DNA from: Phallusia mammillata
Lineage: Eukaryota
NCBI GenBank assembly: GCA_965637545.1
Contig: OZ281495.1
Coordinates: 28,644,001 to 28,708,000, forward strand
Length of the DNA stretch: 64,000 nucleotides
Reading direction: 5' to 3'
Under the pieces are notes generated by a model that saw nothing but the letters and a program-made list of their open reading frames with translations, had not been told where the DNA came from and ran no database searches. The first letter of the stretch is position 1. Each line of letters begins with the position of its first letter. Positions 50,001 to 59,000 of this stretch are shown here, piece after piece. A program made the position numbers and the translations under genes.

Positions 50001-53000
50001 CTCTACAGAGCAACCTTCATGTGAAGAATGCCTTGGCGAAGATGTACTTGGAGTACTTTGCGCTAGTCGCACCCCTACCACCACTCCACCCAACAACCAA
50101 CGCGATAGCCCTGCTTGTGTTAACCGTCCTACCAGTCCCCGCAGAAAACCGGCAGCTATCAGCCCGCGTGTGGTGGTGCCTTCCCCGCGAAATCCCCAAG
50201 AAATCGTCGAGAGATGTGCCGACAGTTCTGTGCGCGACAGACGGCGTGTTATCCACGACAGTCGAGAGCTGACCAGCCTGTTTAACGATCAGGTCCTACC
50301 GGAAGTTGAGCAATCCTTTTCTGATACTTGGAACGTTCTTCCGGGGGATCAGAGGTCGCAATTGATGAAACAACTCCGAGAAGCTTTACAGATGACTACT
50401 GAGCTTGTGCTACGTAACCACAGAAAGGAATACTGTCTTGGCACTACAACAGTAAACAGTTTAACTCATGTATACCCGCTTCTAATGCGTGAAGTCGAAA
50501 CTTGGCATACAACCGCTGTAAAGAAGATGACGAAAGATATTTTCCCCGATAATTGTTGGGGAGGTAACGAATGCAGCGCCAAAGCCACCATCAGCGTGCC
50601 CCTTGCTCCGACTCTGTGGGAGCCTATGAAGAATTTGATGACTGACTTCGGGGCAAGATGCGATGTTATACCGGGAGTTAGCGTCCAAGATCCCGCCACC
50701 AACTGCACTGCGATCCCCAAGGTTGAGTCGTGTCGACACCATCCTAATTCCAATTCACCACACTGTCAACCCAAGGAGTGCAAGTTTGGCTACCCTGTTG
50801 ATGTAAATGCCTTCTTCAGACACGCCAACGATTCTCAGAAGTTTCTGGAAACTGCCCTTCCACTTACTAAACCAATTACTCATAGTCTTTCCCCAGTGAA
50901 CGCTATCCGTGGACGTTTGGAGCTTTCAGTCGGTGAAAATCAACCTTTTTTAATCCAATACTCCCCGGTGCCTGAAAAAGTCAAAATCAGTTTTCATTAC
51001 ACAGCTGTGACGGAATGCAGTCTTAACGATGCAGCCTGCGCAGGGCGCGAATTTGACTGCAACCCTAGACTCGAGGAACGCATTAGCTCCTGGTTTAACT
51101 CAATCTGGGCTAAACTGACAAAGAAGACGCGGCGTTGCAAGAATCAGCTTCGCAAATACGAAAACAATATCGGCGAGGGTGGACAGCAAATGCGAAAGCG
51201 TCGGAATGCGAGCAACCAGCTTACTCTGCCGATTCCCAAGGAGTGTCGGTATGCGCGTTTGTCGGCGACGGTGCCAAGAGAACTATGGGGAGAGTTGAGA
51301 ACTAGAGCAGAGAACAGAGGCGGATCGTACGTGGACATGCCAGAGCGAATCACATTCAGATCTCTTGACAGTCTTCGCGAGTTCTTTGAAAACAAATGTT
51401 CACTGACGCCTCCTGATCCCGACAAGGCAAACTTTAAAAAAGTCTCGAAAAAGCGGAAGAAAAAGGCTGGTTCGGTAATCCGGATTTTACCATCTGATTC
51501 TCTTCCTTTTGTCATCGAGCGAGGCCGATCGTCCAACAGAATCAGGCTTCACTTCTTCACGCAACGCAAAACCCTGAATAATGGTTTGTGATTTGAGATG
51601 GCAACCCGCTGGTCGAGTTCGCAACGCCGCGAATTGGTTCGCGTATCAAGAAAAGACGTCACCACGAGCATCACCGGCACGTCACGGGCGTGTGACATCA
51701 TACATGAACTACAGGACACGTCATCAGTACTTACATCATCAACGTCATGCGTTTTTTGAACGAAAATTCACTGAGCGATTTCCGTTTTGTCGATCTGTGG
51801 ATATGTGTTTGTCATTTTTGGGCGTCCGAAGCGAAGGGAAGGGGGTTCCCTTGAGTGACGCCTAACGTGTTTTGATATTTATTTATTGTCGACGAAGTTC
51901 CAGACCGCCTGTTACGGCGTCAGTTGGACTCTCCAAGCCCACACAATGCAGAGCGACACAAACAGGGTGACTTATCCTACGTAGAGATACTTTTTATGTC
52001 GTCGTTTGTGTTCTGCTTACGTCACTGTGATGTTTTTTCGCGTCGCAAGTCACGTGAGTGCCTTTCGTCTGATTTCCAACTGAGTTTGGTTTTGCAGGCA
52101 AATACACAACATTGTTTAAGCAGCCTCCGAAAAAACACTTGCCACGATATATAGAGAGTCTCTTAAAACTTGATTTGAGGTTTCGGTTGAGACGCACTCG
52201 TATAGTATAATTGACTACCTCATAGACCGTCGCTTACAGCCGTGTTGCGCCATTATGGTTACCACGCAGTATCAACAAAAATATAAACCATTGAACAAAA
52301 ACACACGCTTTCTTATTCACTTTAGATACAAACGAAATGTAAATGCTTCACCTTGTTGCGACATTGTCCGTTCATCACTATTGCCACACCCACAAACTGC
52401 TTAGTAGCCTAATACACCAACTAGAAAAGCAACCTTTTACCTCTACTCTACAGTCAATATGCAGTGAAAAACATCCAGTATTACACAACACACTGATCAA
52501 AATGAAATGTCCGTCTTACAGAGAACTTATCTTGCAGCGCTCGCCGATTTCTTCAGTGTTTTCCTTGTTACTCGTTCATTGTACATTGTCAAATATTTTA
52601 CCACCTTTCTATAATTTGCCCTTAGCCGCTGGTGCGGTGAGTTTTTTGTGTTTTTTGGTAGCGAACGTATTCGTTCCGCTCATTCGCATTTGCCGCCTTA
52701 CTTTTCTCTCATCTCTTGTTATTTTTTTTTATTTTTTTTTCGTGTTTGTTTACCCTCCACGCAGTATAAATGTTCAATTGTCTTTCTAATAAACGTACAT
52801 GGTAAAGAAGAATTGGTCCCTATTGTGTTTGTGCCAGATTTACGAAAAGTTCACAAACGTTTGAATTCTGCCTGCAACATTTCTTCAAATAGAACGAAAA
52901 CCTTAAAAAGTGAGGTTTTATAGTTAATTTGGTAATCCTTCATTGAAGGAGATGTTGTATGTAGTAATCGAAAAGCTGGTAAAGTAGATGAACACCGCTC

Positions 53001-56000: not shown

Positions 56001-59000
56001 GTAGTGCTGTGATAATTGTGGTTGCGATTCTTCTCTTCTTCCTTGGCATCATTCTGGGTGCTGTGTTTATGCATTGCAGGCAAAAGAACAGAGGTTCACA
56101 CAAGTAAGTTCAACCACCGACTATTATATTTCTTCTCTGTATAAAAAAGTGACATCCACCTATATCAGTGGTTCTCAACCTCTCCTCGATCGTGTCCCCC
56201 TAGAAATAACTTTTTGGCCTCGTGGCCCCCTTCAGGTAACCCTCTAAGTCCTGTTGCCCCTTAAAAAATTAAAAGGGCAAGCCTTGTTGGAATTCGGTGT
56301 TAATTTTGGATTTAAACAGGTCGAATAGAGTGAACAAGAATCCGCAATCGTGAAAAACCTCATAATAGACAAATAGTGTGTGAAATAGTCAATTAAATTA
56401 GGGACTAAAGTTATTTGCAACACACGCTTAATTATGTGCATTAAAAAAAGAAAATGGCTTTCAGTGAGTGTCTCTGGTGAATCTACACCCGTGGCCTCCC
56501 GGAACACAGCTCGTGGTCCCTCTGGGGGGCCGTGGGCCCTGGTTGAGAACCATTGACCTATACTATAGTGTCATCGGACCTTTTCAAACTTGATAAAGTG
56601 ATAAAGACCATTTAGCGTGTAACACACGTTTAACCAATGACCAGTGGTTCAAATTCAGTCAGTTCATAATTGTAGTGTTTATTAAGATCTAAGAATCGGT
56701 TATGACATAAATTCATAACTGGCATAAGCCCTGAAGCACCGTTGCAGATAAGCGATCAAGGCACTGTTTTTGATTCGGTACAACGTCTTCAATATAGGCC
56801 TGCAATACTATGATTCTAAGAATAGGTGTCAATGTCACCACCAACAAAATAAGTTCTATATAGCAGCATAGTAAATTTTGCCCTTTTTAATAAAATTGTA
56901 ATATCTAAATGCTATGCCGGTTAATCTATTTGAAACAGTGAATTCGGAAAATATATTGACCTATCAATGGTAAATATGAAAATGTTTTTTTTTTCTGCCC
57001 CGCTTAAAACAGTGGATTCGAAAAGTGGGTTTGAAATGCATGAGAGTCTTTCTGTGGAACAGGGCGCATCTTGTCTTCCCAAGTTTCAAATTTGTGTTGT
57101 TAACTGTTATCGGTTTACTCTTTTGCATTATGGCTTTCCTTTTTACGAACGAATAAAAAATATTACGTGTGTGTTTGTTGTTTCGACTCTAACGCATGAA
57201 CGAGATGACATTTCTAACCCCTCTTTGGTTATTTTGTAACTACCAATACCAAACATCGAAATTTATGGAGGTTACAAAAGTGGTGTGTAAAATGCATAGT
57301 ATTCACAGAAATCATAATATATTGTTTTTCCATTTTTAGCGTCACGCGTAAGGGAAAGTACCGAACCGACAGCGAATGTCAAGAAGTTGCAAAACTCACG
57401 GGACAAAATCAACAAACCAACAGTCAAATTGATTACATGGTGATTGGGAGAAACAGCAGCAGTCGGGTAAGTAAGGATTAAGACGCTTACTTACGCATTA
57501 ACGAACATTTCCCACGCAAAACAGTTAGGGTTACAAACTGTAAATCAGGGACCAGCAACCCCTGGCACGCGACGTGTCTTTTTCGTTGATACAAAGGCAT
57601 TCGACCTCATACTCAAGTGCAGTCTGATGTAATCAAAACTAAAAAACACCCTTAAACTCGATAAACTGACATTAAACATATAGATAGGTACCTAGTCAGT
57701 ACCCTCGCCGTTTAGCATTGGCTAACACTCCGCCTAACTGCACTTGCAGCGGTTTGGTATCTGGAATTTCACCCAATGTTGAAAAAATTGTATGCGTAAT
57801 TTTCTTATTTCCAACAATCTAAGTTTATTATATAGGATCAAATATTACTTATCATAACACAACACGTGCGTGTTTATATTTCACCTACTTTAATCATTCT
57901 ACATTTATCTACTCGCAGGCCTCACCTACAGAACGACCAACAACGTTAAGTCACCACATTGAGAGTACAGGACAATCCTATGCACCACTCACTCCATCAA
58001 GTATAGAAGGTAAACCGAGAGCCAGTAAAAATACTTTTATAGTTTCACTTGTTTCATTTTTTCCTTCAATTCCAATTATTTCAATTCTATTCTTTTGCAG
58101 AAAACGATTTTCCGGAACCGGAGCCTCCTGTACAAAATCCTTTGGACCAAACTGAAACAGATGAAGGGTAAGGCTTAAGTAATGATACTAACCGTTAAAA
58201 AAGGAAAATTTGGCATTCAAAAACTCATAAAAATGTCGTAGCACTCGAACCAGATAAATAAGTATTGTCGACCTTTTTTCAGTGAAACACGTGCGAGTCC
58301 ACTTCACGGACAAACGTTGGAGTCAGAAATGTTTGGAGAACTGGCAAATAGACTTCAGAAAGGTATGAGTTAAACAGATTTCATCTTATCTCCCCCCTAG
58401 TTAATACAGCCTTATATTGCCGTTTGAAAAAAGTGTTGGTTTAATTTTCAAAGTTGCGCAGCTATGTCCGACTTGGTGATTTTCCAGTGCAATTGTGCTT
58501 GTTAAGTTCTTTCACCAAGCAAAATCAACTCAACTCAAAGGAAAACTTTTTATCTTTTTCAGCCGAGGAAACAACTCTTCAGAGCTCAGATGCAGGTTAT
58601 AGTTATCGAAAACCCAGTATTAAAGAAGGTAAGATAAAAAAAACGATTTTGGCTTGACAATAAAACGCGCACTTGTGAAATTCTTACCTCATTTACCAAA
58701 GCCAATTTGTTTCTAGATCCTCGTAGTACAACTCCTCCACCTCAGTTGCCTCCGAAACAGAGAAGTCTTCGTCAGAGTCCTCCTGACTATCCACCACCCT
58801 CTTTCCTCCCTGATGAAATTTCAATTTCCGATGAAAACACATCCAACAACAATAACCGTGATCTTGATACTCCTACTCCACCACCACCTCCTCCACCCCC
58901 TCCTCCTCCGGAGCTGCTCCTCCACTCCTCATCGGGAGAAAACTATCCTCTTCCACCCAAAGAAGCGTGTACCCCATTAGTAAATCCTCAAGCAACAACC

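Follow-up and report, generated by a model that had tools for sequence, protein, structure and literature searches.

Alternative last exons in a tunicate semaphorin gene: a probable switch between a module-bearing and a transmembrane product in Phallusia mammillata

Introduction

The choice between secreted and membrane-bound IgM is made between a donor located inside the CH4 exon and a secretory polyadenylation site. In genes of the calcitonin/CGRP type, a common upstream donor is joined either to a proximal terminal exon that carries its own stop and polyadenylation site, or to distal exons. For semaphorins, the usual division into secreted and membrane-bound proteins follows the genes. Here we describe a semaphorin gene in a stretch of 64,000 nucleotides from the tunicate Phallusia mammillata (assembly GCA_965637545.1, contig OZ281495.1, positions 28,644,001 to 28,708,000 of the forward strand). 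This whole stretch is referred to as the window; positions are counted from its first letter, and the exons and signals described all lie on its plus strand. The gene is probably subject, in our view with good confidence, to an alternative-last-exon switch with intronic polyadenylation, in which two mutually exclusive 3′ ends give rise to two classes of product.

An earlier note on this DNA had also proposed that one gene switches between soluble and membrane-bound semaphorins, through a weak donor competing with intronic polyadenylation. The parts of that proposal that stand are a form without an anchor, ending in a large C-terminal module and made by way of intronic polyadenylation, and transmembrane forms that lack the module; the weak-donor mechanism does not. 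The locus resembles IgM in that one gene can give a soluble or a membrane-anchored product by use of a proximal polyadenylation site within an intron of the longer mRNA. It differs in that the secreted end of IgM extends a shared exon, with a donor set against a polyadenylation site, whereas here the proximal end has an exon to itself, which brings its own acceptor and shows no conserved donor. The calcitonin/CGRP type is alike in form, as alternative last exons served by a common donor are also found in the tunicate semaphorin, but here it is a guidance cue that gains or loses its membrane anchor and its cytoplasmic tail.

Structure of the gene and its module-bearing product

The exon map is anchored by a deposited, cDNA-derived P. 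mammillata protein of 1265 residues (CAB3261261.1 / A0A6F9DH77, here P0024), which came up when the Sema portion of the Ciona protein was used as a query. It aligns to the window as 16 colinear exact segments that correspond to 16 exons, at an identity above 99% and with two amino-acid differences overall. Its orthologue in Ciona is LOC100176831, which used to be named 'semaphorin-6D-like', and the orthologous genes in the tunicate RefSeq sets (Ciona, Clavelina and Styela) share exon order and phases with Phallusia. Exons 1 to 14 (22639 to 47599, by exact mapping of P0024) hold the start codon, an N-terminal extension of 112 residues, a hydrophobic segment, the Sema domain and a Cys-rich, PSI-like exon. 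Pfam matches to Sema lie in two open frames, 46445-46681 and 46767-46922, and PF01403 (Sema) was matched both in open frames of the window and in proteins P0003, P0005, P0006 and P0019. Exon 14 encodes a Cys-rich stretch of 16 residues that may belong to a PSI domain; PF01437 is absent from the precomputed Pfam column of the tunicate proteins.

Exon 15 (47851 to 47921, 71 nucleotides) is the last exon common to both classes of isoform and ends in a strong donor, CCCG/gtaagt, in phase 1. A phase-1 donor is present at the same exon in the five other tunicate loci that were compared, namely Ciona (L010), Clavelina (L011), Styela (L012) and two further loci, L004 and L007. In P0024 the sequence EVPPP/EQPSCEE records the junction of 47921 to 50009, by which exon 15 is joined to a giant exon. 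The coding part of this proximal terminal exon (50009 to 51591, mapped by P0024) supplies residues 739-1265, comprising a linker of about 80 residues and a Cys-rich module of about 440; the protein ends in TLNNGL and is followed by the TGA at 51589-51591. The acceptor, tctctacag/AG in phase 1 with the exon starting at 50009, is as the earlier note had placed it, as is a GT at 51584 that would make the exon 1575 nucleotides long and phase 1/1. Reading through this GT gives GGT TTG TGA, so that the stop indeed lies two codons past 51583.

A long intronless open reading frame (ORF) with its own stop and polyadenylation signal and without a Pfam family could also be an independent gene, or the remnant of a mobile element, nested in a semaphorin intron. 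That the cDNA-derived protein and transcripts join this ORF to the Sema exons speaks against it, as does a phase-1 acceptor that matches the donor of exon 15. No ATG precedes the conserved region and the acceptor cag/AGCAA is also kept in L004; the giant ORF is therefore an exon and not a nested gene, an origin to which we give next to no probability. A mobile element or repeat was considered separately as the source and was ruled out, the ORF being single-copy in the 240-Mb genome.

The transmembrane branch

Downstream of the giant exon lies a second set of exons that could be reached from the same donor. A juxtamembrane micro-exon of 48 nucleotides (53722 to 53769, phase 1/1) is recognized by its splice sites and because cassette micro-exons of relatives agree with it in position and phase; the transmembrane isoforms probably include it as an optional cassette. 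The suggestion that it is optional had been made before, and it gains support from micro-exons of the same phase and place that are included or skipped in relatives. Its peptide resembles that of a Clavelina micro-exon, ATDVLVVGVTDSVPR, as judged by eye without a statistical score; searched in L004 and L007, the peptide scored at the level of shuffled controls. The transmembrane exon (55962 to 56103, 142 nucleotides, entered in phase 1 and left in phase 2) encodes a helix of 22 residues followed by a basic stop-transfer stretch. Homologous transmembrane exons, all with the same phases, occur in L004, Ciona (142 nucleotides), Clavelina (139) and Styela (148).

The cytoplasmic-tail exons (57850 to 59351) were located by tblastn of the C-terminal parts of the Ciona, Clavelina and Styela transmembrane isoforms against the window, and their extents are approximate. 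Conserved tail stretches lie at 57850-58011, 58281-58364 and 59049-59345, with a stop at 59349-59351. The single hydrophobic stretch of 22 residues and the conserved proline-rich tail exons fit a transmembrane semaphorin like those of class 1/6; Ig and TSP families were found neither in Pfam scans of full-length module-form relatives nor in the precomputed Pfam column for the transmembrane forms. The phases, too, agree with what had been read from the letters: the donor of exon 15 is in phase 1, the micro-exon is 1/1 and the transmembrane exon is entered in phase 1. The conservation of the phases of exon 15, module exon, micro-exons and transmembrane exon in Ciona, Clavelina and Styela is beyond chance. 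The conserved exons thus point to a Phallusia transmembrane form without the module, which would be a type-I transmembrane semaphorin of about 1140-1156 residues counted from Met1 (the equivalent of the 1027-1043 residues predicted in the earlier note), in agreement with the 1098-1184 residues of the transmembrane isoforms in relatives.

Two side observations concern the introns of this branch. The relatives carry two juxtamembrane micro-exons, and 53770-55961 of the window may hold a second one with weaker signals; a scan of 51592-55961 for a second micro-exon gave three loose candidates, none of them convincing besides 53722-53769. Insertions resembling miniature inverted-repeat transposable elements, with the terminal inverted repeats CCAGTGGTTCTC...GAGAACCACTGG, are present at 53231-53539, 55236-55602 and 55758-56178, in the introns between the module and transmembrane exons and just past the latter, and the first of these is flanked by TTAA.

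Isoforms and transcripts in relatives

Both classes of product are annotated in the tunicate RefSeq sets. Ciona intestinalis LOC100176831 has an isoform X1 of 1279 residues and isoforms X2-X4 of 1169, 1155 and 1138; Clavelina lepadiformis LOC143445033 has an X1 of 1269 residues and X2-X5 of 1184-1148; and Styela clava LOC120346291 has an X1 of 1247 residues and X2-X6 of 1129-1098. Within each of the three species X1 is the same as the other isoforms up to the end of the equivalent of exon 15 and unrelated beyond it. X1 continues into the module, and X2-X6 into a short linker, a transmembrane helix and a proline-rich tail, the transmembrane isoforms differing from one another mainly by inclusion of micro-exons. 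The three loci share one layout: exon 15, a module exon with a stop, an interval of 1.4-3.2 kb, two micro-exons of 42-63 nucleotides in phase 1/1, and a transmembrane exon of 139-148 nucleotides with phase 1 in and phase 2 out.

A word-based protein search added two homologues, on environmental and Logan contigs, in which Sema-domain exons precede the ORF on its own strand; one of these contigs also bears a transmembrane exon 8.4 kb further on. A profile of the module searched against 1.8 billion representatives gave 20 matches, among them four long proteins that carry a Sema domain and in which the module forms the extreme C-terminus; two of the four are the X1 isoforms of Ciona LOC100176831 and Clavelina LOC143445033. 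In all of about 20 tunicate homologues the module is C-terminal. Apart from these, L007 has a candidate micro-exon of 42 nucleotides and phase 1/1 at 6057-6098, about 0.8 kb past the module stop, with strong splice sites and a Ser/Thr/Lys-rich peptide like that of Ciona micro-exon 1; the contig stops before any transmembrane exon.

The same two classes are seen at the level of RNA. The contigs L008 and L009, of 4.2-4.5 kb, have unbroken Sema-plus-module ORFs, beyond which they extend for about 0.8 kb of 3′ sequence, and are spliced mRNAs. Four further contigs, L013-L016, are read as transcripts because their ORFs of 2.8-3.2 kb are unbroken while the gene spans at least 15 exons in the genomic loci. 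In one assembly of the Joint Genome Institute (JGI; 3300018785), L016, which encodes a transmembrane form (P0027), and L014, which encodes a module form (P0028), are identical over 1961 nucleotides and split after a phase-1 G, the same type of junction as at exon 15 of the window. Joining of a single upstream donor to either of two acceptors is thus seen in the L016/L014 pair and in the RefSeq isoforms; in the window it is the proximal junction that is documented.

The products expected of Phallusia could be fewer if the module exon had become a constitutive last exon, with the downstream transmembrane and cytoplasmic exons no longer used. The databases searched hold the module form alone for Phallusia, as such a loss would predict. 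Yet the transmembrane and tail exons of the window keep open frames, good splice sites and motifs conserved with Ciona, Clavelina and Styela, and three annotated relatives and one transcriptome make transmembrane forms, so that we regard such a loss as improbable.

On the preferred reading, an alternative-last-exon switch, the donor of exon 15 at 47921 would have two partners, the acceptor at 50009 nearby and the exons of the distal set. The proximal choice, recorded in P0024, brings in the terminal exon, whose stop is at 51589 and whose polyadenylation site is probably marked by the AATAAA at 52788, and gives the 1265-residue semaphorin without a C-terminal anchor. The distal choice would skip the giant exon and continue through the optional 48-nucleotide micro-exon to the transmembrane exon at 55962 and the cytoplasmic exons. 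The decision would lie in the choice of acceptor, which would go together with whether the proximal terminal exon and its polyadenylation site are recognized. Once the module exon had been joined no donor would be left, and the coding fate would have been set at acceptor choice; cleavage at the proximal polyadenylation site would presumably also keep the distal exons out of that RNA.

The 3′ end of the module exon

The competing model, put forward in the earlier note, treats the giant exon as composite. In that model, a weak internal donor at 51583 (AATG/gtttgt, the donor itself at 51584 to 51589) competes with intronic polyadenylation as in IgM, and three products result, the third being a transmembrane form that includes the module (1552-1568 residues). 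The arrangement of the sequence is compatible with it, as the GT at 51584 is in phase 1 and fits the 48-nucleotide and transmembrane exons, and a stop, an AATAAA and a GU-rich element follow. The strength of the site is not. Scored with a crude donor matrix, AATG/gtttgt reaches −0.5, below all 15 donors of the gene confirmed by P0024 (1.7-6.5), and among the 84 GTs within the giant exon that at 51584 ranks seventh. Position +3 is A in 14 of the confirmed donors, G in the remaining one and T in none, while gtttgt has T at both +3 and +4.

The comparison of the end of the module exon in the five other tunicate loci points the same way. In none of them does a phase-1 GT occur past the last conserved strand of the module exon, and the phase-1 GTs in their last 25 codons lie only within conserved Ser-Gly-Lys codons, with scores of −4 to −6. 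With Phallusia included, the stop is found 3-12 codons beyond an FFT/YFS motif in all six loci, and 14 near-full-length homologues stop 1-15 residues past the module profile. The predicted structure places the final β-strand at residues 510-521 of 526. The position of the stop in relatives and the predicted final strand together indicate that the stop therefore marks the natural end of a folded domain.

Products lead to the same conclusion. P0024 reads across 51583 to the TGA; no RefSeq isoform, cDNA or assembled transcript carries both the module and the transmembrane segment; and no relative longer than 1279 residues was found in a search whose length range extended to 2238. The third product thus finds no counterpart, and the IgM-like competition between donor and polyadenylation site is not supported, as five other tunicates lack a usable donor where the module exon ends and P0024 reads through the site. 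In all likelihood the GT at 51584 occurs there by chance and is simply read through, and the composite-exon model as a whole appears quite improbable. A narrower version, in which the weak donor is peculiar to Phallusia and produces a membrane form with the module on display as a minor product, is much less likely than the alternative-last-exon arrangement, and in our estimate very improbable.

Downstream of the stop, the 3′ untranslated region of the module isoform would extend for about 1.2 kb (51592 to 52815) and would be intronic in the transmembrane isoform. This extent is drawn from the first AATAAA after the stop and from analogy with L013, L014 and L015. The candidate hexamer (52788 to 52793) is the sole plus-strand copy between the stop and 53722, and a GU-rich downstream element, TTGTGTTTGTG (52823 to 52833), follows 30 nucleotides past it. 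It is plausible that the AATAAA at 52788 is the polyadenylation site of the module mRNA. The stretch after the stop had been described as AU-rich, but it is not especially so: its A+T content is 57%, against about 59% for the whole window (from the mean of the GC column). Among the transcripts of relatives, L014 and L015 end 23 and 16 nucleotides past the start of an AATAAA at +446 from the stop, and L013 ends 24 nucleotides past the start of another at +1736. By analogy, the module mRNA of the window would be polyadenylated inside an intron of the transmembrane mRNA. As a separate observation in a distant relative, the two 3′ ends of module mRNA given by L013 and by L014/L015 would amount to tandem alternative polyadenylation in the proximal terminal exon.

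The C-terminal module and the N-terminus

The module, as read from the window, comprises about 80 disordered linker residues followed by about 440 residues with 19 Cys; some of the Cys positions do not vary among 18 sequences. Three N-glycosylation sequons are present in the module, and hydrophobic segments are absent from it. No Pfam family was found for it in the Pfam copy searched; a precomputed 'faint' tag of PF26709 (DUF8238) was not reproduced, and no paper mentioning the tag was found. A structure model with a predicted local distance difference test (pLDDT) score of 75 was used for structure searches. Foldseek against the PDB gave no match at an E-value of 0.001 or below, VIA-align wide gave a best Z of 7.1 over 55 residues, which is within the noise band, and the ESM Atlas gave TM scores of at most 0.26. 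The modelled fold appears to be without a clear known match, which falls short of proof that it is novel.

A furin-like RKRR lies at 51193-51204 (module residues 395-398), in a loop between the two halves of the module where pLDDT falls below 50 (residues 390-404). Basic clusters stand at the matching place in relatives, RRRSRNSNRQPRRRSRSAARR in P0001 and RPRRNQQQMRHRRS in Clavelina. The RKRR is a possible proprotein-convertase cleavage site.

At the other end of the protein (window positions 22639-23077), the sole hydrophobic N-terminal segment comprises residues 113-131, preceded by RVRRRRS and lying 112 residues after the annotated start (MDEVSS). An in-frame stop is located seven codons upstream of the annotated ATG, and the motif EEIAGLRxxRGLTV of the N-terminal extension is common to Ciona, Clavelina and more distant homologues. 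The secreted form of 1152 residues predicted previously is the deposited 1265-residue protein counted from the internal Met114. Its lack of a C-terminal anchor suggests, with some uncertainty, that the module form may be secreted.

Several observations weigh against the alternative-last-exon interpretation or parts of it. The Phallusia entries in the databases searched are of the module form only (a targeted search with the Ciona X2 transmembrane and tail region was swamped by proline-rich words, returned only Ciona and says nothing either way); the tunicate RefSeq sets hold both classes, whereas the deposited Phallusia form is module only. The RefSeq isoforms are themselves model predictions. 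The AATAAA and the GU-rich element had both been noted before and are both there, but the hexamer occurs in 47 copies in the 64 kb of the plus strand (about 1 per 1.4 kb), which is a chance-level density, and an equally GU-rich downstream stretch accompanies 17% of these copies, the copy at 52788 being in the top 17%. As far as the DNA alone goes, low-level splicing from the weak donor at 51583 could still occur. With regard to secretion, the hydrophobic segment may be an internal signal, or it may remain uncleaved and serve as a signal anchor or type-II anchor. The exon structure, the module mRNA of this species, the two classes of isoform in relatives and the junction they have in common are established; use of the transmembrane exons in Phallusia, the exact polyadenylation site, actual secretion and any regulation of the switch are points that we infer.

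Relation to vertebrate semaphorins and significance

Among the vertebrate matches listed, that nearest to the Sema domain is semaphorin-6D-like (31% identity, E-value 4.5e-53); the class 3 semaphorins listed match at about 28% identity, with E-values around 1e-33 to 1e-36. The long proline-rich tail of the tunicate transmembrane form is a likeness to class 6. Class 3 semaphorins have a basic tail, and the module form here carries basic RX[KR]R clusters. Vertebrates differ from the tunicates in having separate genes for secreted and membrane semaphorins, where here there is one. The tunicate protein further differs from those of vertebrate classes 6 and 3 in its module of about 440 residues, for which neither the Pfam copy searched nor the structure searches gave a convincing match; the module has no Ig domain.

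An alternative-last-exon mechanism is of a well-known kind, and the isoforms are already in RefSeq and the European Nucleotide Archive (ENA), unnamed, as 'uncharacterized protein'. With the basic facts thus deposited, the present analysis is a modest addition rather than a surprise. No paper describing the isoform switch was found in a literature search. An expression study of a Ciona 'Sema6a' (PMC11728170), which may or may not be the present gene, does not mention isoforms. What the analysis corrects is the mechanism, which is a matter of acceptor choice and terminal-exon definition rather than of a weak donor.

The interest of the locus lies in a single gene that would serve for both secreted and membrane-bound semaphorins, conserved in the four ascidians compared, Phallusia, Ciona, Clavelina and Styela. 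Its soluble form bears a large uncharacterised C-terminal domain, and tests by knock-down or expression of single isoforms are straightforward in Ciona or Phallusia embryos. We suggest tentatively, and with a little less than even confidence, that one tunicate Sema6-like gene provides two kinds of semaphorin, a transmembrane one that acts on contact and has a tail for reverse signalling, and a diffusible one with a tunicate-restricted, Cys-rich domain of about 440 residues and no recognisable fold, by a switch that is regulated by tissue or stage. If so, the gene would offer a natural system in which one and the same Sema domain signals at long range and by contact, so that the two modes can be compared.

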